A DNA stretch of 64,000 bases. Source: Macrostomum hystrix (Eukaryota; Animalia; Platyhelminthes). Below are positions 13,664 to 63,824 of this stretch, in pieces; the first letter of the stretch is position 1; each line of letters opens with the position of its first letter. The stretch covers positions 2,294,001 to 2,358,000 of the forward strand of contig CATNEN010000030.1 in NCBI GenBank assembly GCA_950097015.1. The letters are read 5' to 3'. A model generated the notes under the pieces. That model did no database searches. It saw only the letters and a program-made list of their open reading frames with translations, and was not told where the DNA came from. The position numbers were made by a program, and so were the translations under genes.

Positions 13664-14289
13664 TCATTGCTTCATTCAAGCGCAGCTCACTAGCTAAACT
13701 ATGCAACTATGCAAAAATTCCGTATGTCTAGTGTATATGTGTGATGGCCAGTCGGCGTATACTGGTCTGATAGAATTGGGATTTGACGGCGATTTGACTC
13801 TCCAGGTTCTATATTCAGGGCTCTGTGGCTGTACAGTGGACCAAATTTTAGGCCTTTTAACCTACAAGTTAGTATACATTTATATGTGACGTGTGTCATA
13901 CGCTTCTGACTCTATTTAGTAGTAGCCCTGACAGGGATTCTTTAGATCGTAATATTGTGTTAAAACTGAAAACTGCATTTGTTCTTATTATTACCAGATT
14001 ATCTGAACGCTTCACATGTGAATTGGCCTTCCAGTTTTCGGTTTAGAAGTTAAACTGCATTTTTTGCACCTTACTATTGACATTATGCACTAGCTGATAT
14101 GGTAACGCTTAATGATTTCTTAAACATAAAATTGCCGAAATACAAAGCTAGCTATGCTGTTACTTTTTACTGATCTGAATAATGTATTTACATCATTATT
14201 TTATTTTTGCTTGTAGCTAGATAGGTTATATTAGTTTATATATTAGTTATATTAGTAATAGATTAATTACGTGAGATTTAAAATCAGAA

Positions 14290-15445
14290 GAGACAAGACA
14301 GGGAAGAGATAGATGAAGTAGGAAAAATATGAGACAGGGAAGAGATAGATGAAGTAGGAAAATATGAGACAGTGGAGAGATTGATGAAGTAGGAGAGACG
14401 TGAAACAGGGGAGAGATAGATGAAGTAGGAAAATATGAGACAGTGGAGAGATTGATGAAGTAGGAGAGACGTGAAACAGGGGAGAGATAGATGAAGTAGG
14501 AGAAATATGAGACAGGGAAGAGATAGATGAAGTAGGAAAATATGAGACAGTGGAGAGATTGATGAAGTAGGAGAGACGTGAAACAGGGGACAGATAGATG
14601 AAGTAGGAAAATATGAGACTGTGGAGAGATTGATGAAGTAGGAGAGACGTGAAACAGGGGACAGATAGATGAAGTAGGAAAATATGAGACAGTGGAGAGA
14701 TTGATGAAGTAGGAGAGACGTGAAACAGGGGAGAGATAGATGAAGTAGGAGAAATATGAGACAGGGAAGAGATAGATGAAGTAGGAAAATATGAGACAGT
14801 GGAGAGATTGATGAAGTAGGAGAGACGTGAAACAGGGGACAGATAGATGAAGTAGGAAAATATGAGACAGTGGAGAGATTGATGAAGTAGGAGAGACGTG
14901 AAACAGGGGACAGATAGATGAAGTAGGAAAATATGAGACTGTGGAGAGATTGATGAAGTAGGAGAGACGTGAAACAGGGGAGAGATAGATGAAGTAGGAG
15001 AAATATGAGACAGGGGAGAGATAGATGAAGTAGGAAAATATGAGACTGGAGAGATTGATGAAGTAGGAGAGACGTGAAACAGGGGAGAGATAGATGAAGT
15101 AGGAGAAATATGAGACAGGGAAGAGATAGATGAAGTAGGAAAATATGAGACAGTGGAGAGATTGATGAAGTAGGAGAGACGTGAAACAGGGGAGAGATAG
15201 ATGAAGTAGGAGAAATATGAGACAGGGAAGAGATAGATGAAGTAGGAAAATATGAGACAGTGGAGAGATTGATGAAGTAGGAGAGACGTGAAACAGGGGA
15301 GAGATAGATGAAGTAGGAGAAATATGAGACAGGGGAGAGATAGATGAAGTCGGAGAGACTTGAGACACAGGAGAGATAGATAAAGTAGGAGAGGTGTGAG
15401 ACGGTTGAGATAGATGAAGTAGGAGAGACATGAGACAGGGGAGAG
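14290..15445. repeat. Purine-rich ~34-35-bp minisatellite with higher-order structure
   Basis: Three unit variants (..GATGAAGTAGGAAAATATGAGACAGTGGAGA; ..GATGAAGTAGGAGAGACGTGAAACAGGGGAGA; ..GATGAAGTAGGAGAAATATGAGACAGGGAAGA) recur in 2- and 3-unit blocks. They account for ORFs 14247-15431 and 14284-15480. Confidence 0.95.
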
Positions 15446-15583
15446 ATGGATGGGTTGGAGTGGTGGCTCTTCCAGTCCATGGACTGAACAGCTGCTAGGT
15501 TAGGTGCAGTTTCTATCTATGCTTGATACTTAGTCATTTTTGATACTCAATCCGCAGCTGATTGCGTCATCACAATCAAAGTC

Positions 15584-18500
15584 ATGGCTGACGATGATTC
15601 TTCATTCGCTCCTTTCGAAGACGACGCTGCCGCAAACGCCGGCGGCGGTATTGGCTCCGAAGACGAGGACGCCGCTCTGGCTGCGCCTGAGTTACGCGAA
15701 GGTCGCGCCGACGATGGCGAGGAGGACGACGGCGAGGAGCTGTTCGGCGACGACATGATGAACGACTACAGGCCGATTCCGGAGCTAGACAGGTGGGCAG
15801 ACATTTTTAGTGTCAGTTTTATTAAGGTTACTAAGGTTATTAAGGTTAATGTTCAGTGTTAAACATCAAAATTGAGTTGTCGAAATTTGTTTATGGTATT
15901 TCCAAGGTTGGGTTGACTGAGTGGTAACGGAGAGAAGGCTTTTGGACTTTCCCAAGTTTTGCACTGTCCAATGATATAAAAGCCTGTGCAGACGTACACA
16001 TGCACATGTGAGCTTGTTTGTACTCAGGAGTCTGTGGTTAGTAGTCTGCTTAGGATTCTGTGCTCAGGTGTTTGTGCTCATGAGCCTGTGCTCAGGAGTC
16101 TGTAGTCAGAATTCTGCTTAGGAGCCTGTTTTCAGGAGTCTGTGCTTAAGAGTCTGTGCTTAAGAGTCTTTGCTCAGGAGGCGAAATTGCCTGGGTCGAC
16201 TATCGCAAAATGAAAGCCTTATAATATTACAAAGCCTAAACCCCACCTCTAATCGAACCACCCAAGGTACGGCCCCGATGGCATCGACGACTCGGAGTCG
16301 CACGACCCGATGACTGTCGAGGAGCGGCTGGCTGCCGAGCGCTCCCTACGCCGTCGGGAGGCCGAAGAGGGCGCCTCGAGGCCGCCGGATATGCGCCGTC
16401 GCGTTTTCGACTTCTCCGCCTCGGAGCTGGGCGCCTACGAGTCTGACGACGAATCGGAATCGGGCGCAGCCGCCGCCGCTCGCAGACGCCGACGCCGTTT
16501 AGCCGAACGCGCCGCTCAAGGCGAAGAGTCTGCCGCGGCGGCCGCCGCAGCCGCCTTCTTAAATGACGACGAAGGCGAGGGCATGGACGCGCTGGAGAAT
16601 CTAGAGAACACCAGGGGCATGACCATCGCCGAGTGGGTGAAACAGCCGCAGGCCAGGCACGAGGTAATGATAATAACATTAATAATAATAATAACTATTG
16701 CAGGAGGGCTGTGGGGCAATGGCACATCATTTGGTCACACAGCGAGTAGGCCCATTCCGCTGACTCCTGAGCACACACGCACACAGATACTGTAAGCAGG
16801 CACACACACATATGTACATCTGCCCTGACTTTCTTGTCGTCAGGCAGTGTGCACTCTCACTGTGCCTTGGAGGTTAGATTTCAAGGGCGTGAATTGCACG
16901 ACAAGCCCCCAAGCCTTCTCTCCGCGGCTGAGCCTCAAATTAATGTGGCATCGCCGCGGAATCGAGCTAGGGACCTTGGTGCAAGATGTACACACCTGTG
17001 TGAGCGTGTTCCTGTGTACGGTATCTGTGTGCGTGTTTGCTCAGAAGTCAGCGAAATGTGCAGAATTGCCTCCTCGCTGGCTGCGGGTCTAGTGTCACCA
17101 AATGATGTGCCATTGCCTGCAGCCCTCCTGCAATTATCAATATAATTATAAATGCCATGAGTTCATGTTTCAGGTTAAAATATGGCTTACAATAATGAGT
17201 ATTCGATCGAATTTACATTAATACTACTACTATTTCGCTTGTAACGGTCTCCTTATTGCACCCTATCAATTCGCAGGTCAAGAACCGTTTCATGAACTTT
17301 CTGCGTTCCACAACCGATGCTTCCGGCCAGAATGTGTACCACCAGCGCATCATGTCCATGTGCCAGGCCAACAAGGCCAGCCTAGTTGTTGACTACGTGG
17401 ATCTGGCTGCCAGGGAGCACGTGCTAGCCTACTTCCTACCCGAGGCTCCAATCGAGATGCTGCAAATTCTTGACGAAGCCGCCATGGCTGTGGTGCGCGC
17501 TGCCGTAGCTAATTATGACCGAATTCAACCCGTCATTCGGGTCCGCGTCTCCGGCCTGCCACTGCTTGAACAGCTGCGACAATTGCGGCATTCTCACCTG
17601 AACCAGCTGGTGCGCACGCGCGGCGTTGTGACCTCCTGCTCGGCTGTGCTGCCCCAGCTGAGCCTTGCCAAGTACAACTGTACCAAATGCGGCTCAGTGA
17701 TTGGCCCATTCCTGCAGAGCCAGGCTGCCGGAGCGACCGAGAATCGTCCAGTCAGCTGTCCGGAGTGCCAGACTGGCGGCCCGTTTGAGCTCAACTCTGA
17801 GCAGACTATCTATAAGAATTATCAGCGAATCAGCCTTCAGGTTTGTTTGAGCATCATAGGCATGCTTGTTTTTAAACTGTGCATTACTTAGTCCACTAAT
17901 TTGGCAACTTCCAGAAATTACATGCACCTTTATCAACACATTCCCTAAACTACACACCCCTCTTTGACACATTCACGTAAAATTCAGATTCCATGATTAA
18001 CACATTCTGTAAAAGGCATATTCCATAAACTATAAACCTTCCCCAATTAGCAAATTCTATAAACTGCACATTACATAAACATCACATTCCATAAACTACA
18101 CATTACATAAACTGCGCATTGCAAAAACTGCGCATTCCATAAACTGCAAAGTCCATAAACTACACATTCCATAAACTGCGCATTGCAAAAACTGTACATT
18201 CCATAACCAGCTTATTCTCTAATTGACACTTTCCCTTGACATCGGAGACGTTCCCTGAGTTGCGCATTCCCCTAAAGTGTACATAGGAGAATAGCCTGTT
18301 CCTAAACTGGGATAAATATCCCCACTGTCGTCCTATTTACAGGAGAGCCCTGGCTCTGTTCCGCCTGGTCGCTTGCCCCGCGCCAAAGATGTCATCCTGC
18401 TCGAGGACCTGGTCGACAGCTGCAAGCCGGGCGACGAAGTGGAACTCACCGCTGTCTACACGCATAGCTACGAGTCTTCGTTAAACTCTGCGCACGGCTT

Positions 18501-45842: not shown

Positions 45843-46399
45843 AAAGCATAGCAACTAGGCGCTAATTAGGTGGAATTAGGGGGATTTCTATAGCTAGACT
45901 GCACATTTGGGATTTTGATACTGTGACTACAATGTGTTTATTGTTTGGGCCAATGACAAGCCGAAAAGTACACTTGGAACAGTCGATAGTCATTTCTTCT
46001 TGCTGTCTAAGGGCTCATTTAGTTTGGTTTGATAATAAGTTAAAATTATTTATTATGTTTAACGAGAGGTCAAAAGCGAACGTGCTGTCCCCCAGTCCGT
46101 CTGTCTCCCTTAGCTTCAATTCTGTGGCCTGATTCGGTTGCCTATCCTATCTTTTTTATATTCCCTTTGCTGGCAAAGTATAACTTTCGCATTATAATAC
46201 TGCGCTTGCTCTAGTTACTTTTTTAATGAATACGTCAGTCTTGTTTGTGTCTGATTTAGTTATTTCAATTCGATCTTCACAGGGCTCTTTTATTCAGCTT
46301 AGTGAGTAGCATTCTTTATTAGTCTGTTAAATATTAGATATTCATCAACAGTTAATCCCGCTCTAAAATCCCCATTCCAAATTACGAGTACTTCTCCAG

Positions 46400-47220
46400 G
46401 ATCCCCATTCCTACTCTTCTAAGATCCCCATTCCTACTCTTCTAAGATCCTCATTCCTACTCTTCTAAGATCCTTATTCCTACTCTTCTAAGATCCCCAT
46501 TCCTACTCTTCTAAGATCCTCATTCCTACTCTTCTAAGATCCTCATTCCTACTCTTCTGAGATCCTCATTCCTACACTTCTAAGATCCTTATTCCTACTC
46601 TTCTAAGATCCCCATTCCTACTCTTCTTAAATCCCCATTCCTACTCATCTAAGATCCTCATTCCTACTGTTCTAAGATCCTCATTCCTACACTTCTAAGA
46701 TCCTTATTCCTACTCTTCTAAGATCCTCATTCCTACTCTTCTAAGATCCTCATTCCTACTCTTCTAAGATTCTCATTCCTACTCTTCTAAGATCCTCATT
46801 CCTACTCTTCTAAGATACTCATTCCTACTCTTCTTAGATCCTCATTCCTACTCTTCTAAGATCCTCATTCCTACTCTTCTAAGATCCTCATTCCTACTCT
46901 TCTAAGATTCTCATTCCTACTCTTCTAAGATCCTCATTCCTACTCTTCTAAGATACTCATTCCTACTCTTCTTAGATCCTCATTCCTACTCTTCTAAGAT
47001 CCTCATTCCTACTCTTCTATGATCCTCATTCCTACTCTTCTAAGATTCTCATTCCAACAATTTAATTGTCATTCCTACTCTTCTGAGATCCTCATTCCTA
47101 CTCTTCTGAGATCCTCATTCCTACTCTTCTTAGATCCTCATTCCTACTCTTCTAAGATCCTCATTCCTACTCTTCTAAGATTCTCATTCCAACAATTTAA
47201 TTGTCATTCCTACACTTGAT
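46400..47220. repeat. 23-bp tandem repeat, ~35 copies, between NAA50 and INTS2
   Basis: Unit ATCCTCATTCCTACTCTTCTAAG; degenerates further to ~47340. Confidence 0.96.
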
Positions 47221-47404
47221 TCCGCATTACTACCCCAATATCCTCATTTCTACACTCAAATCCATATTTCTACCCCAGTATCCTTTTTTCTACTCTCAAA
47301 TCCATATTTCTACCCAAATATCCTCATTTCTACTCCAAGACCCTCAGCAGTCTGTGGCCTCCTAAATCACCAAATAGCGCGTTCACATTTCCAGTCCTGG
47401 AACC

Positions 47405-50400
47405 ATGCAGTCTGGTTCAAACGGCTACGAACAGTCGCAGTTTCGCCATCTTGACACTGACACAATGGACAACGACGGCGTTGAATGCGACTGCGACTTT
47501 GCCAAGATCTATCGGGCTGTACGCTGCGGCCGACTCGGCTCCCAAGTCTGGTCCGAGGCTGAGCTGCTGGCCCTGGCGCCTCTCCTGTCTTGGCACAGGG
47601 ATCGTATCGACCTGGCCCGCCTGTTGTCCACCTGCAGGCCCGGCGCCAACAGTCTGCACTTTGGTCACGTGCTCGATTTCGCCAATGCGCTGCACTATAG
47701 CGTTGATTTTGGCGCTCTCGGACACGACGCGCGCGTTGATTTGCAGCAGAGAATTGTAGACAAAGGCGGCCTGATTGGCGATTTCACCTCGGTTGTGTGG
47801 CCTACGGCTGCCACCAGCGGAGAATTCGAAAGCTGCGATCGGCCAGATCAGCAGGCCAGGATGCTGCTCAGGTAAGGCTGCTGTATTTAAATTGCCGATT
47901 TAGTGTGAAACTTTAAACCCGTAACATTTTGGTGTCTGATCATATCCGCAGAGACATTCTATTAGCGGTTCGAACTGCTGAAGCTCACGGATTTTCTAAT
48001 AGTGGCGCGTCCACCTCGTCCAGCGTCGGCGAATCGACCGACGACAGTCAGGCTGTCGCCGAGCTCGCCGACTCTGAGCTGCTTTTCCACCACTGTCTGG
48101 CAACCCTTATCGCAGTGGCTCACCGCCTGCCCGACCTCCTTCCACCGGACCGCCTCCTGCCTGGCCTTCTGCGACTCCGGCGCGGCCGACGACTACTTCA
48201 GCATGTCGCCGCCATTCAGCCGCACGCCTGGCGTCGTCTAACACGCCAGCTGCTGGCCATTGGTCCAGGCCGGCCTATCCAATGGGCGCTGGCCTTGGCC
48301 GAATTTGATCCTGGCCAATCTGATTGGCTAGCCGAGATGTGCTTAGCTGAGCGGCGCCATCCTGAGCTCCTGGCCGGCCTGCTCAGTCGGGCCAGCCCGC
48401 AGGCCAGACCGGCCTCTCTAAGGCGATTATTAATGCACGAATCGACGGACACTAGAGCCTGGTTTCTGGCCGCTGTCACCGCGAGTTCGACTGGCAGTAC
48501 AACTGGCCGGAATCGGCAGCAGCATCAGCCATCAGCAGCTGGCACCGCATTCTTAGCGGCCTGCCGCCCGGACCTTCTAGTCGAGCTGCGTTCCGTTGCC
48601 TCAGCCAGCGCCATCGCTGCCTCCGTAGCGGCTTCCACCCTGGCTAGCCAGCTAGTGAAATTGTACGCCGCTTTGTATTGCCACGCGCCAAGCCATCCGG
48701 CGCTGACTGAGCCGGAGCTGGCCGCCCTTGCCGAGCTCCTGACTTCGGCCGGGCCGGACGCGCCCGGCAGTCTCACAGCCGTCTGCGTCGCCTTCGCACT
48801 AATCGCCTACACGGCATTTAACGAGGCCCAACAGGTTCGACTTCTGGCCTGGCTGCGTCGGCTAGTAAGGGAGCCCGGCCGGCCAGACTGTCGCTATAAG
48901 GTCGGTAGCCTTCCGAAAAGTTAAGCTTTTTTCGTACTTTAATGCACCTCTAGCCACCTGTGTTTCCCGCACCTGTGCCACCTCAGGAGGTGCTGTTACT
49001 GTGCGCCAGTCACCTGCATGCCAGACAGCAGGGCCAGGCCTGCGAGCTGCTAGACAGTCAGCTGGGCTTGCGCCAGGCTGCCAAGCGCGCCCAGTATCAT
49101 CATCAGCCACAGCAACAGCACTTGCCTCAGCTTCAGGCACCGCAGCAGCAGTTACTGCAGCTGGCCCCAGCCCTAGTGAAAGTGTTCCTAGCAGATGTGC
49201 TTCCAGAGTCCGCAGTTGCGGCTCATGCTGTTCGTGTGGACGTAACTCCCGGCCTGACCTCGGCTACAGAAGGTTACGTGCCTGTGCATTGCGTTCTGCA
49301 GCTCTTGCAGATGCGGTCCTTTGCCAAGTACAAGGTGAGAAACTGATTAGATAAATCAGTGGAGATCACATGACATGACACTGTACACAGCCCCCAAGCC
49401 TTGTCTCCACGGCTGCACCAAAAAACGTTTCCCGCCGTCGAATCAAGCCCATGGACTTTTGCGCGAGAGGCAAACGCGATAGACCGCTATGCCACTCAAT
49501 CCCCAATGGCAGGGTGAAATTACAGGAATTTTAGCTGATTCTATCTGATCTTCCTCCCAATAGAAGAGTGAAGTTTGTGTACTAAGCTGTTGACCAGCTT
49601 CAAAGGCACTAATTTGCGATTTCCCTCCGCATTGGCTAGGCTGATGTCACCGGCTGGGTGCTGCGCCAGATCAAAGAGTGCCGCGCCCCGCTGAACTCAG
49701 TAATGCCAACCCTGATCGAAGCGTTCGCCAAATCCGTTGTGCAGCCTCACGACAAATGGAGCGCACCTGCCTACGAGGCTATTAGACAGTCGGACATACT
49801 GGAGTTCTTCACCCCCTCCGCCTGCGGACCGGCAGCCGCCTGCGCTCCGATTCGTAGTTTCCATGACAACCAAGGTGCTTTAAATAAACTAGGCAATACA
49901 GAACAGTCAGAGCGCGATCTGACACCGCAGCTACTGATTCTGCACTATGTGCTCTGCTATGTGGATTGCCTTTTTGAGTCTAGGCAGGAGATCTCTTGTA
50001 CCGGCCGCTCTGTGCATCGCTACGACGCTAATCTGTTGTCGCGAATCCCAGTTAGTTACCTGCTGAGGCATTGCCGACGCCGACCGGAGCACTATCGGGT
50101 GCTCTATCCGCTGCTAGTGCGTCTGCTGCTGCTCAGAATGCCGCATCTGCTTCTAACCGAGCTGCCGATTCAGGTGAAGCAACTTACTCGTATATATTTC
50201 AGATCCTAAAATTTTTCTAAACTCGCCTATAATCTATATATCCCCAGAAATCCCAAGATCTGTCTAGAATCTAATCTCCATAAATCTCTAAGTACGTTAA
50301 AAATAAGAATCCCCGTATTTTCTGAAATCCAGAACACAATTCTCAAACTCTGTCTGGAATCCCAAGAAATCAATAAAACCGTATAAAAATTAATTCCCCA

Positions 50401-53400: not shown

Positions 53401-55477
53401 CTGGATCCCGTACAGGTTTAAAGATTTCTATGGATCTGGATCCCGTACAGGTTTAAAGATTTCTATGGATCTGGATCCCGTACAGGTTTAAAGATTTCTA
53501 TGGATCTGGATCCCGTACAGGTTTAAAGATTTCTATGGATCTGGATCCCGTACAAGGTTTAAAGATTTCTATGGATCTGGATCCCGTACAGGTTTAGAGA
53601 TTTCTAGGGATCTGGATCCCGTACAGGTTTAGAGATTTCTAGGGATCTGGATCCCATACAGGTTTAGAGATTTCTAGGGATCTGGATCCCATACAGGTTT
53701 AGAGATTTCTAGGGATCTGGATCCCATACAGGTTTAGAGATTTCTAGCTGTATGTTGGGAATTCGGGGGATCTGGATGTTTGACATTAGGGATTTCAAGG
53801 TAGATTCTTGGTAAATTTCGTGAATCGGATCCATTTGAACACTACACTTGTACAGTAATCTTATCAGACGCAGCTGTTACGCGCCGTAGGTGGTCGCCGC
53901 TCTGCCCGACTGCGTCTATCGCCAGCCAGCCCTGCTGGAACTCTGCCTGCGCATCATTGAACTGTCTCTGCGTGCCTCCGACTCTTACTGGGACCGGCAG
54001 ATTGCTCTGGCCTGTCTAGATGGCCGGCAGCCAGTAGACCAGCCGGCCTCTCATCATCATCACCAGCAGCAGCCGCCGCAACCTCAGCAGCAGCAGCAGC
54101 AGACTCAGCAACAGCAGCAACAGTTGCTACTACATCCGGACAAGGGCTCGCCTTGCCAGCCACTCAGACGAAGCCTATTGGTCACCCAGGCGGCCTGCAC
54201 TGTCCAATTGCTGCTTGAGCGCTGCCTGGACTCCCCTAGACACATTAGACGAATCCTGGCCACGTTTATTCACTCGCTGTTTATATCAGATCGGGAGCGA
54301 GCCCTGTGCCAAGTGGTGCACTGGCAGTGCTACCCACTGCGTCTGGTGCCATTCGCAGCCAGTGCCATTCCCTCAATGCACATCTGTCTGGACTTTATTC
54401 TGGACCATCTGGCCTTCAACGCTGATCCGGCTGCGCGCATTTTCAATATTAATCTGATGGGTTTTTTAGCCGGCCAGTATCGGATACAGGCTGCCCTAGA
54501 TAAGGCGGCCACTGTGCTGGAGAGCCTCACGGTGCTGTCCAATCAGGTTGGTCATTCGAGAGCGGAGAGAAGTAGAGAAAGTGAGCGGAGAGAAGTAGAG
54601 GAAGTGGGCGGAGAGAAGTAGAGAAAGTGAGCGGAGAGAAGTAGAGGAAGTGAGCGGAGAGAAGTAGAGGAAGTGGGTGGAGAGAAGTAGAGAAAGTGAG
54701 CGGAGAGAAGTAGAGATAGTGAGCAGAGAGAAGTAGAGGAAGTGGGCGGAGAGAAGTAAAAGAAGAGAGCGGAGAGAAGTGGATGAGAGCGGAGATAAGG
54801 AATGGATAACAGCGGAGATAAGGAGCGCATGAGAGCGGGGAGGAGAGAATGAGAGCGGAGATAAGGAGCGCATGAGAACGGGGAGGAGAGAATGAGAGCG
54901 GGGAGGAGAGAATGAGAGCGGAGATAAGGAGCGCATGAGAACGGGGAGGAGAGAATGAGAGCGGGGAGGAGAGAATGAGAGCGGGGAGGAGAGAATGAGA
55001 GCGGGGAGGAGAGAATGAGAGCGGGGAGGAGAGAATGAGAGCGGAGATAAGGAGAGGAAAGGAGGTTATAGATTTAGAGAGAAAGAATTAGTAAAGTGAA
55101 GTGAGTAAGGGAAGGTTAAGATAGAAATAATGTTTACTCTCCAGGTCCACTCCCTGGATGAGAAGGCCGACTTTGCCATCCAGTGCATGGCCGCGGTGCT
55201 GAACATGTGCAAAGCTTTCCCTAAGCTGGCCAGGCCGGCATCACAATACCTGCTAGGCCTGATGTGTCAATGCCGCGTCACCCTGGCAACGTTAAAATCA
55301 CCTGTGCCAGTTGAATTTAGCCTACCGGCTGTCACTGTCAAACAATATCGTCGAGATCTGCAACAACTGAGCCTGCCGCAGCGCTATCAGCTGTGCTACG
55401 TGCTGGCCGAGGCCACCCTGGATGCCATTGTGCGGCGCACCCTGGTGCCGCGCACACTGTACTTTCCGCCTGAATGA
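47405..55477 (+). CDS. INTS2: Integrator complex subunit 2, 7 coding exons, ~1228 aa
   Basis: Exons 47405-47871, 47952-48900, 48987-49334, 49640-50173, 52143-52541, 53890-54546, 55145-55477 (3687 nt, phases consistent). Motifs SVDFGALGHDA, GEFES, TPQLLILHYVLCY, LYPLLVRLL, SAIPSMHICLDFI resemble vertebrate INTS2 as recalled, and the length fits. AATAAA at 55506. Confidence 0.92.
49380..49505 (-). mobile_element. SINE family 2 head fragment (INTS2 intron 3)
   Basis: GCCCCCAAGCCTTGTCTCC...GCGAGAGGCAAACGCGATAGACCGCTATGCCACTCA matches 18905-19040. Confidence 0.75.
50459..51919 (-). mobile_element. BEL/Pao LTR retrotransposon remnant in INTS2 intron 4
   Basis: Integrase core MDYAGPINY..KSYILISTCSATRAVHLDLV..Y*FLHALRRFVARRGIPSIASDNTRTF (with a stop); upstream IIRHCHDAVFHEGVPATLSKIRE and FLDNDGPVRS. 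LTR-like 51919-51766 (TGTTCTGCA..GCAACA) followed by PBS TGGCGCCC; second LTR-like block 50863-50459 (TGTTCTGCA..CTACA). Confidence 0.88.
52625..53748. repeat. 35-bp tandem repeat, ~32 copies (INTS2 intron 5)
   Basis: Unit GGATCTGGATCCC(A/G)TACAGGTTTAAAGATTTCTA(T/G). Confidence 0.97.
54560..55065. repeat. Two adjacent purine-rich repeats (~23 bp and ~20 bp) in INTS2 intron 6
   Basis: GAGAGAAGTAGAGGAAGTGAGCG, then GAGAGAATGAGAGCGGGGAG. Confidence 0.9.
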
Positions 55478-55827
55478 GTGATTCCATCTTTGCTTGATTC
55501 AACAAAATAAAGTCCCTTATCTGATCTGTGTAAAGCTAATACTATTTCGAGTAGTTATGTGTGTGTAATTACTTATGAAAACGTTAATATACTCGAAACT
55601 GTTCGCCACTTGGCAAAAAGACAACGCCAATTGAAGCATTTTACTTGTTTTTCTTGTTCAAATTGTTAGTAAAGCTTTTCTACATCTGTCATTAGCTTGT
55701 TCTGTTATCTCTAAATCTCTGCTAGGTGCTTTATATGTTTGCAATTGTTCAACTTATTAAGTTAAATGTATTTTCGTCATTTGAGTTTGCCTTTGTTTTA
55801 TTAACAGTTTTAAATTACAAACTTAAA

Positions 55828-56290
55828 ACCAGCTGTCTCCCCATCCCCAACCAGCTGTCTCCCCATTCTAAAACCAATTGTCTTCGCATCCCTAACCAGC
55901 TGCTGTCTCCCCATTCTAAAACCAATTGTCTCCGCATCCCTAACCAGCTGCTGTCTCCCCATCCCCAACCAGCTGTCTCCCCATCCCCAACCAGCTGTCT
56001 CCCCATTCTAAAACCAATTGTCTCCGCATCCCTAACCAGCTGCTGTCTCCCCATCCCCAAACAGCTGTCTCCCCATTCTGAAAAGCTGTCTCCCATCCCA
56101 AACAGCTATCTCACCATCCCGTACCAGCAGTCTCCTCATCCCGACTAGCTGTCTCCCCATCCCCAACGAGCTGTCTCCTTATCCCCAAAGAGCTGTCTCC
56201 CCATCCCCAACCGGCTGTCTCCCCATCTCCAACCAGCTGTCTCCCCATCCCCAGCCAGTTGTCTCCCCATCCCCAACCGGCAGTCTCCCG
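55828..56290. repeat. ~22-bp repeat between INTS2 and PRPF6
   Basis: Unit CCAGCTGTCTCCCCATCCCCAA and variants. Confidence 0.9.
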
Positions 56291-56349
56291 ATTCGCAAGC
56301 TAACCAGCCCCGGTGTCAAGCCTAACCAATCTGTATTGCTGTGTTGCAG

Positions 56350-59300
56350 TCGGCCCCTCAGTCTTTGGTGTCGCGCAAGCGGCGCGAATTCATCGGCATG
56401 CCGGCGCCGCCCGGCTACGTGCCCGGCTTCGGCCGCGGCGCTACCGGCTTCACTACCCGGTCGGACATTGGGCCGGCGCGCGAGGCCGACGACGCGCCGG
56501 ACGAGCGACACCTGCCGCCGGCCAAGAAGTCGGCCAGGGGCGGCGCCGGCGAGGACGAGGAGAAGGGCGAAGAGGAGGAAAATTTGAATGACGCCAATTA
56601 TGACGAGTTCAGCGGCTACGGCGGCTCCTTGTGCACCAGAGATCCCTACGAGAAGGACGACGAGGAGGCCGATCGGATCTACTCCAGCGTGGACGATCGC
56701 ATGGACGAGCGCCGCAAGGAGCATCGCGAGCGTCGGTTTCGCGAGGAGATGGAAAAGTTTCGCAAGGAGCGGCCAAAGATTCAGCAACAGTTTGTTGATC
56801 TGAAGCGCGACCTGGCGCTGGTGTCGGAGGATGAATGGCTGTCCCTGCCGGAGGTTGGCGACGCGCGCAACAAAAAGCAGAGAAATCCTCGCGCCGAGAA
56901 GTTCACGCCGGCGCCGGACTCACTGCTGGCTAGGGGCCTGTCGGCCGGCCAGTCTACGGCCCAGGTAGATCTGCGGGAACAGCTCCAAGGCGGCATCGCC
57001 ACGCCATGGGGCGGCGCCAGCACCAGCGTCAGCGCCGGGGCCGCCGTCGACATCGATATGAAGAAGATCGGTCAGGCGCGCACCTCTTTAATGGACATCA
57101 AGCTGACTCAGGCGGCTGACTCTGTCACTGGCCAGACTGTGGTGGATCCTATGGGCTACCTGACCGATCTAAATTCTGTCATACCGCAGCATGGCGCCGA
57201 TATTAACGATGTTAAGAAGGCCAGGCTGCTGTTGAAGTCGGTGCGCGAAAGCAATTTGAAGCATCCGCCAGCTTGGATCGCCTCGGCTAGGCTGGAAGAG
57301 CTGACTGGCAAGATGCAGGAGGCCAGGAATCTTATATTGCGCGGCGCCGAAGAGTGTCCCAGGTGAGTAAAAATGATAACGCGAGTCAATTCTGTTTGTC
57401 CTACTGCTAGTAGAGTAGTTGGCGTATTATAAAACGTACGTACCTACCTACCTACCTACCTACCTACCTACCTACCTACCTACCTACTTACCTACCTACC
57501 TACTTACCTACCTGAGCCATTAAGTCAAGTGCCAGATAACAGCAGCAACATGACTTTCCCCTCATCTCCCCACAGATCGGAGGACATCTGGATGGAGGCT
57601 TCCCGCCTAATCCCAGCCGACCAGGCCCGGGCAGTGGTGGCGCAGGGCATCGGCCACCTGCCCCAGTCTGTCCGGCTGTGGGTGCGCGCCGCCGAACTCG
57701 AAACTGAATCCAAGCGCAAGCGTCGAGTATTTCGCAAAGCCCTGGAACAGGTGCCCAGCTCTGTGCGCCTTTGGAAGCTGGCCGTCGAATTGGAAGAGCC
57801 GGAGGACGCCAGGGTGATGCTTCGCCGAGCTGTGGAATGCTGCCCAACCAGCGTTGACCTGTGGCTGGCCCTGGCCAAACTGGAGACCTATGAGACAGCC
57901 AGGAGTGTGCTCAACCAGGCGCGCGACAATGTACCCACTGATCGGCTAATCTGGATTACAGCCGCCAAGCTTGAAGAGGCCCACAAGAATGTTGGCATGG
58001 TGGGCAAGATTATCGATCGGGCTGTCACCGCTCTGCAGGTGGCCGGTGTTGAAATCAACAGAGACATGTGGCTGAAGGATGCCGAAGAGTGCGAATCCGG
58101 TGGCTCTGTTGAGACAGCCAGGGCTATTGTGCGCACCGTAGTTGGTCACGGCATAGACGAACAGGATCGCAAGCGTCAGTGGCTGTCAGACGCCGAAGGA
58201 TTCACAGCCAGGGAGGCTTACGAATGCGCCAGGGCGGTCTACGCCAAGCTCATCGCCGCTTTCCCGGCCAAGAAGTCGGTCTGGCTGGCGGCGGCGCACT
58301 TCGAAAAGAATCACGGCAGTCGAGAGGCTCTCGAAGCTCTGCTGGTGAACGCCGTGGCCAAATGTCCGACAGCCGAGGCCCTCTGGCTGATGGGCGCCAA
58401 GTCCAAATGGTTGGCCGACGACATCGACGGAGCTCGCTTCATTCTGGCCAACGCTTTCAAAGCCAATCCGAACTCCGAGGAGATCTGGCTGGCCGCTGTC
58501 CGGCTCGAGAGCGAGAACAACGACTACGAGAGAGCCAGGCGGCTGCTGCTGCGGGCCCGCAACCAGGCTGCCACAGCTCGGGTCTGGATGAAATCTGCCC
58601 GCCTAGAATGGTGCCTGGGCGATCTGAGCCAAGCCAAAGCCATCCTGTCCGAGGGCCTGAAAGCCTATCCCCAGTTTGACAAGCTCTGGATGATGTCCGG
58701 CCAGATTGCCGAACAGGAGGGCAACACTGAAGCGGCCAGGGCCGCCTATAACGAGGGCATTCAGCGCTGCCGCCAGTCTGTGCCGCTGTGGCTGCTGCTG
58801 GCTAGACTGGAGCTTAACCAAGGCCAGGTTAGTCTGCCCACCTACAAACCCCTGTCTGCCCACCAACAATCAGTGCAATTTTTTATTCATTAAAAATTAT
58901 CCCATAATCAGGCCACTCGCGCGCGCAGCATCCTGGAGAGGGCTCGAGTCAACAATCCGCGAGTGCCGGAGCTCTGGCTGGAGGCGGTGCGCACCGAGCT
59001 GAAGGCCGGACAGCCGCAGATGGCTGCGGCCACAATGTCACGCGCCTTGCAGCAATGCCCAACAGCCGGCCAGCTGTGGGCTGAGGCAATCTTTATGGAG
59101 GCCAGGCCGCAGAGGCGCACCAAATCTGTTGACGCTATGAAAAAGTGCGAACACGATCCGCACGTGCTGCTGGCCGTTGCTCGCCTATTCTGGTGCGAGC
59201 GCCAGATAAGCAAGGCTCGCGATTGGTTCCAGAAGACTGTGAAGCTGGACAGTGACTTTGGCGACGCGTGGGCCAATTGGCGCCGATTTGAATTGCAGCA

Positions 59301-59463
59301 CGGCACCGAGGATCAGCAGAGGCGGGTGGCCGCCCTGTGCGAAGCTGCCGAGCCGAGGCACGGAGAGCTTTGGTGCTCAATTAGCAAACTGGCCTGCAAT
59401 TGGCGCCTGAGAACGGCTAAGCTGCTGGACCTGGTGGCTGAGAAAGTGCCCACACCTGTCTGA
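56350..59463 (+). CDS. PRPF6: Pre-mRNA processing factor 6 (U5-102K, Prp6), 3 genomic coding exons; start codon not located
   Basis: Exons 56350-57362, 57576-58827, 58912-59463 (2817 nt). [73 protein letters not shown], many HAT repeats, DFGDAWA. Acceptor GTGTTGCAG ends at 56349. Confidence 0.98.
57438..57512. repeat. (CTAC)n microsatellite in PRPF6 intron
   Basis: TACCTACCTACC... about 18 units. Confidence 0.95.
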
Positions 59464-60580
59464 TCTAATAATCACCTGAACTACAGTCACTGTTCAACTT
59501 GACGTTCAAGTACAAACCCACTGTAAAAATGTAAAAAATAATACTTTTGACTCGTGTTTCACGCCGTAAGCACTTATTGGTTTTTTTTCTGCCTACGCTA
59601 ATCATTTTATAAAGACCTATTTGTGAAAGTCATAATTTAAAACGAATAAAATGTTCCTATCCTAGGCAAGCCAGTTTGGTTTAGCGGGATTAAATCATAA
59701 GAAAAACAAAAGCAGTCTTAACTTGTGTACATGTATATCACACCTGCTATAAGTACATCTTTGCTATTATTATCGCTCAGAATAGAATATGTTTCAGGAA
59801 GCTATTAATAAAACTACTACTATTTACCCATTTCAATGCCTTGCTTCTTACTATTAGTAGTAGAGAAAACAACAGCAAAGAAAAAAACTTACATAGAAAA
59901 CAAAGTTCGTTTTTTCAACTTGCATAGTAATATAAACAGAGTAAAGAAACGAAAAAAGTTTATTTTGTCACGTTTTTTATTTTCGTCTACGATTTTCAAA
60001 CACTGGCCCCTGTACGATTTCTGTAAACTCAAACTGTAGACAAAATCAATTTAAAAAGGCAGGAAATTGTGTGTATTAAAAGATTGATTTCAGTGACTGA
60101 GATACTGTATGATAATCAAGAATAAATGAAAATATCTTTAAAAAAGAGAAATGACAGTCATCCAGACTCTTTCTTAGCTTATTAACACGAGAACAGGTGC
60201 TGGTTAATTACATTTACATTTAATGTGCCAGAAAATAAGCACAACATAGAAAGACAGGAACATAAAAACTCTTATAATAACAGAAGGTTCTAGCGGTGAG
60301 GAAAATTAAAAAAGATTAAAATATGTTCAACTAACGAATTTATCTCAGCTGATATAAATTCCTCAAAGTACACGTGGAATGGATTTACGTTGTGACAACC
60401 ATGCAATTATAAACAATTCTTTAAATTACTATTCTGATGGCTAATAATCAAGTACAGAGGTGGCACATTAGATGGGGCGTTTAGAAAATGAATAAAACGG
60501 TGAGTTAAAGTTATTGCGATTCGGTTAAGCCATTGTCTATTATAAATTTTAATCAATCAAAAATCTACTTGGCTAGCCAT

Positions 60581-63824
<3,244 letters not shown>

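Follow-up and report, generated by a model that had tools for sequence, protein, structure and literature searches.

In flatworms, the spliced leader (SL) added by trans-splicing can provide more than a 5′ end: the use of its 3′-terminal AUG as the initiator methionine codon is established, with in vivo evidence for such initiation, according to later papers that describe the work of Cheng, Cohen, Ndegwa & Davis (2006, J Biol Chem 281:733). ORFs begun by the SL AUG have been termed slORFs (PMC9851317), and the argument from orthologous N-termini that we use below has been applied to SL-AUG starts in Echinococcus (PMC3510090). The SL of Macrostomum lignano is 35 nt long with the 3′ end ...CAATTTATTGCATG (PMC8629364); it is identical in M. 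lignano, M. cliftonense and M. hystrix, ending in ATG (PMC8629364, PMC10468722), and is thus no guide to species among these three. This terminal ATG is described by the authors as probably the translation start, and Wiberg et al. (2023) kept it on their reads for that reason (PMC10468722).

Here, we describe the gene for the splicing factor PRPF6 in a 64-kb stretch of Macrostomum DNA (the window), which has in common with the flatworm slORF system an AUG-ending SL, an in-frame acceptor and a conserved N-terminus that lacks a genomic ATG. Its host is a free-living macrostomorph rather than a parasite. Our search of the literature on PRPF6 and the spliced leader found no paper tying PRPF6 to an SL-donated start. 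The mechanism is that of known flatworm SL-AUG initiation, and the PRPF6 case adds little conceptually beyond Cheng et al. (2006); its value lies in an unusually clean view of how an AUG-ending SL allows a gene to lose its own start codon.

The PRPF6 Gene of Macrostomum

By sequence comparison, the identity of the gene as PRPF6 is not in doubt (Table 1). Pfam places the PRP1_N domain in exon 1 and the TPR_14 and HAT families in exons 2-3, an architecture in common with human PRPF6 and yeast Prp6, the bridging protein of the U4/U6.U5 tri-snRNP, and the first 337 residues match both human PRPF6 in the PDB and yeast Prp6. The three coding segments, spliced and preceded by one added Met, give a stop-free protein of exactly 939 aa, compared with 941 aa in human, in agreement with the product of about 939 aa and normal length that had been anticipated in a preliminary description of the locus. 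The alignments begin at residue 2 of human PRPF6 and residue 3 of yeast Prp6, in both cases upstream of Met17, the first methionine that the Macrostomum genome encodes in this frame; the PRP1_N model match starts only after Met17. In human and yeast, the initiator ATG is part of the gene itself, whereas Macrostomum PRPF6 has none of its own.

Both cis introns have lengths divisible by three, such that the genomic frame continues through them, but each contains stops. A short repeat with a 12-nt unit lies within intron 1 (about 57428-57517).

Table 1. Features of the INTS2-PRPF6 region, in window coordinates; X1, X6 and X8 are sequencing runs with assembled contigs.
Feature	Position	Strand	Basis
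INTS2, 3′ part, stop codon 55475-55477	53890..55477	+	Pfam PF14750, E 7.4e-31, for ORF 53890-54618; last ORF 55130-55477
Tandem array in the outron, about 21 copies of a 22-nt unit	55824..56289	.	Tandem Repeats Finder
In-frame TAA closing the PRPF6 frame	56323..56325	+	Read from sequence
Pyrimidine-rich tract and trans-splice acceptor	56332..56349	+	Motif fit; SL junction 56349/56350 in contigs
Sixteen ATG-less codons, conserved N-terminus, translatable only from the SL AUG	56350..56397	+	Frame; orthologue alignment
First genomic in-frame ATG (Met17)	56398..56400	+	Read from sequence
PRPF6 exon 1 (PRP1_N domain)	56350..57362	+	Pfam PF06424, E 2.6e-54; human PRPF6, E 7.7e-144; contigs
Cis intron 1, 213 nt, GT..AG	57363..57575	+	Joint in X6, X8 and X1 contigs
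PRPF6 exon 2 (HAT/TPR repeats)	57576..58827	+	Contigs; Pfam
Cis intron 2, 84 nt, GT..AG	58828..58911	+	Joint in X6, X8 and X1 contigs
PRPF6 exon 3, coding part, TGA stop 59461-59463	58912..59463	+	Spliced translation; Pfam
PRPF6 3′ UTR, AATAAA at 59645-59650	59464..59650	+	X6 contig end at 59631

A 5′ End without a Start Codon

Read upstream from Met17 (56398), which is also a possible alternative start site, the PRPF6 frame is closed by a TAA 75 nt from this ATG and upstream of the acceptor. The intervening acceptor consists of the tract tgtattgctgtgttgcag, whose 3′ end is 56349 and whose last six letters, TTGCAG (56344-56349), agree with the trans-acceptor motif [T/C]TNCAG of M. lignano (PMC8629364). 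It is followed in phase 0 by sixteen codons that encode the conserved PRPF6 N-terminus and include no ATG, and then by Met17. Between the end of the upstream gene and Met17 (55478-56397), there are four ATGs (55557, 55575, 55735 and 55766), all of which run into a stop before 56350. The preliminary description had recorded the TAA, the phase-0 acceptor and the first ATG correctly in every particular, and its failure to detect an ATG-bearing cis exon in the upstream gap agrees with the fate of these four frames.

The Spliced Leader Junction in RNA

A search of sequencing runs returned four runs of one study in which 88 % of the words sampled from the gene occur. The contigs of two of these, X6 and X8, were compared with 56290-59800, as were those of X1 and X3, which are runs of other organisms (A and B). 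RNA support for the 5′ end comes from the assembled contigs of X6 and X8, from one study with no library type on record; such contigs hide rare isoforms and give no expression levels. Each of the two runs holds one contig (3009 nt in X6, 3220 nt in X8) spanning the whole PRPF6 mRNA with both cis introns spliced out. Immediately 5′ of 56349 (G), both contigs carry 23 letters that do not come from the window, TGCGAAGACTCAATTTATTGCAT; together with the G, these letters (...TTATTGCAT + G) correspond to the 3′-terminal 24 nt of the 35-nt Macrostomum SL, fused at 56349/56350. The letters across the junction are ...TTGCATG followed by TCGGCC, which sets the SL ATG in phase 0. As the introns are absent and the SL is present, the contigs represent cDNA. 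The X1 and X3 contigs cover only parts of exons 1-3 (57271 onward) and the 3′ end, with the 5′ end outside their coverage.

No copy of the SL was found in the 64-kb window with up to three mismatches allowed; hence, the leader is joined in trans, and a cis origin of the leader was rejected on the same grounds. A scan of the whole window against Rfam at gathering thresholds gave no match, with neither an SL RNA nor another RNA gene nearby. The recovery of 24 of the 35 SL nucleotides probably reflects the use of a k=31 assembly graph at a leader common to thousands of mRNAs. These contigs supply the RNA that the preliminary description had looked to as a check, namely transcripts carrying the SL at 56350, and its premise of an SL ending in AUG holds for M. 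lignano, M. cliftonense and M. hystrix and matches the contig letters.

Since the SL is common to thousands of mRNAs and the evidence for its attachment comes from contigs alone, the junction might have been created during assembly, through fusion of PRPF6 to an abundant transcript that bears the SL. Such a fusion would need a shared 30-mer in the graph, but the genomic letters before 56350 are unlike the SL; moreover, two runs show the same junction, which uses a canonical acceptor and has the phase predicted for it. We consider a chimera of this kind extremely improbable. A different challenge is that an upstream cis exon with its own ATG might provide the start in the main or a substantial isoform, with the SL form being minor or condition-specific. 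The intergenic region does contain its four ATGs, and rare variants are dropped from contigs. Nevertheless, both full-length contigs end in the SL; 56290-56348 is covered by no contig, and no contig of X6, X8, X1 or X3 joins a cis 5′ exon, or any upstream window sequence, to 56350, which is the very configuration that the preliminary description had named as fatal to its proposal. None of the four upstream ATGs opens a frame through to 56350, and the coincidence of the Met columns with those of the orthologues leaves no room for extra residues. A cis-encoded start is accordingly very improbable in our estimate.

Run X5, a sediment metatranscriptome, also contains about 6 % of the words sampled from PRPF6, and these may stem from a Macrostomum-like sediment animal or from a conserved part of the gene.

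Conservation of the ATG-Less N-Terminus and the Site of Initiation

A word search with the 337-aa piece encoded by exon 1 recovered many N-terminal PRPF6 fragments, its length filter excluding proteins of ~940 aa. None of the fragments found is more than 70 % identical to the query, and thus no possible close relative of Macrostomum is among them. When these are aligned with MAFFT, the Met donated by the SL shares its column with that of P0027, P0039 and P0046. The N-termini compared include those of scallop (P0013, MSVQSLVSRKKKSFIG), Schistosoma margrebowiei (P0001, MSVQTLVTKKRKEFIG) and P0039 (MSAVQSLVDRKKKSFIG), the last of which lines up with the SL-Met N-terminus of Macrostomum column for column. 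The 16-residue extension is identical to orthologous N-termini at 9-11 of its 16 positions, and the 16-mer, shuffled 5000 times, never reached the observed mean BLOSUM62 score; by this measure, the likeness of the ATG-less residues to the orthologues is far above chance. A frame match with the SL AUG would arise by chance with a probability of about 1/3, multiplied by the chance of 16 stop-free codons, and in S. mansoni the SL AUG shares the reading frame of 28 % of trans-spliced mRNAs. The frame match by itself is weak evidence, while the conservation is decisive evidence that the stretch is coding. Because the first in-frame ATG of the genome comes only after the conserved N-terminus, a full-length protein requires the SL AUG.

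We posit the following mechanism. The PRPF6 pre-mRNA receives the SL by trans-splicing at the acceptor TTGCAG (56344-56349). With it come the cap and a 5′ UTR of some 32-42 nt, as well as an AUG that is set in frame directly before TCG (56350) and would serve as the initiator. Scanning ribosomes would meet this SL AUG first and produce full-length PRPF6, whose N-terminus, Met-Ser-Ala-...-F-I-G-M-P-A-P, would match the ancestral animal N-terminus; the trans-splice acceptor occupies the place of the orthologues' genomic ATG. We assign a probability of roughly four in five to this reading as a whole, i.e., SL trans-splicing at 56349, the SL AUG as the in-frame initiator and a 939-aa product with the ancestral N-terminus. 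Our observations comprise the acceptor, the joining of the SL to the mRNA, its reading frame, the lack of a genomic ATG and the conservation; initiation by ribosomes at the SL AUG we infer from the first-AUG scanning rule and the published evidence in other flatworms. The central proposal of the preliminary description, that SL trans-splicing gives PRPF6 its start codon, thereby finds support at the RNA level, and its initiation step is likely on these grounds.

The transcript might alternatively be trans-spliced as seen but translated mainly from AUG 56398, with ribosomes skipping the SL AUG by leaky scanning and the frame match being incidental. By vertebrate standards, the context of the SL AUG is weak (U at both -3 and +4), while AUG 56398 is preceded by the purine G at -3. 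The PRP1_N model begins downstream of Met17, and the recognised domain therefore does not need the extension. Further, not all of the S. mansoni mRNAs in the SL-AUG frame need the SL AUG, and in Echinococcus nearby AUGs may often stand in for it (PMC3510090). Against a start at Met17, no other AUG precedes that of the SL, which lies about 32-42 nt from the cap, and the 16 upstream residues are conserved up to the orthologous Met in many animals and partly in human and yeast, a likeness that untranslated sequence would lose. We regard predominant initiation at Met17 as unlikely, while leaky scanning from the SL AUG to AUG 56398 could yield an additional form shorter by 16 residues.

Orthologous Loci and the Loss of the Genomic ATG

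The preliminary description had raised the prospect that related species would miss the same ATG. This is not the case: at the five orthologous loci at which we read the DNA, with at least 144 nt upstream of each (S. margrebowiei, Rodentolepis nana and three further contigs), all five, including the two parasitic flatworms, have a genomic ATG of their own within six codons of the SL-Met position, in the same alignment column in three of them. The three contig orthologues read ATG TCN GCN, and Macrostomum reads CAG|TCG GCC. The start of S. margrebowiei (ATG TCA GTC) lies one codon downstream, and that of R. nana (ATG ATA TCC) six codons downstream. The Macrostomum acceptor thus stands at the codon where 3/5 of the inspected orthologues have their ATG. 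Among the flatworms examined (S. margrebowiei and R. nana), the genomic PRPF6 ATG is lost only in Macrostomum. The schistosome and tapeworm loci inspected have kept theirs, such that the dependence of PRPF6 on the SL is not flatworm-wide.

The PRPF6 gene models of S. margrebowiei (319 aa) and R. nana (507 aa) are short against about 940 aa, and are probably split or truncated annotations.

One could go further and propose that in Macrostomum the ancestral ATG was replaced codon for codon by the acceptor while the parasitic flatworms kept theirs, and that the output of full-length PRPF6 became obligately coupled to the capacity for SL trans-splicing, a coupling that could connect the supply of spliceosomes with SL usage by feedback instead of being a neutral ratchet. 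We hold this extended scenario to be decidedly improbable. The idea that a spliceosome gene in need of trans-splicing forms a special loop is a weak one, as PRPF6 already needs the cis-splicing of two introns and its dependence on trans-splicing is therefore not special. Of more practical consequence, Macrostomum gene models built with the SL trimmed would render proteins of this type truncated or mis-started.

The Upstream Neighbour and the Rest of the Window

The gene preceding PRPF6 on the same strand is INTS2. From its stop (55477) to the PRPF6 acceptor there are 872 nt, of which 466 nt belong to a tandem repeat (unit consensus AACCAGCTGTCTCCCCATCCCC, with higher-order periods of 48 and 92 nt), leaving a repeat-adjusted gap of about 400 nt. 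The array makes up about half of the gap and ends 60 nt before the trans-splice acceptor. In M. lignano, genes have been assigned to an operon when they are neighbours on one strand, are both trans-spliced and lie less than 1 kb apart after adjustment for repeats, and repeats inflate the intergenic distances within operons (PMC8629364). INTS2 and PRPF6 may likewise constitute an operon, with gap and strand fitting this definition if INTS2 is also trans-spliced.

Elsewhere in the window, minisatellite arrays at 54496-54936, 61140-61915 and 62800-63315 contain long repeat-derived ORFs on both strands, which are probably non-coding simple repeats typical of the genome. The local GC skew is strong, reaching +0.51 at 14001-16000 and -0.35 at 46001-48000, and these stretches probably reflect strand-biased simple repeats.
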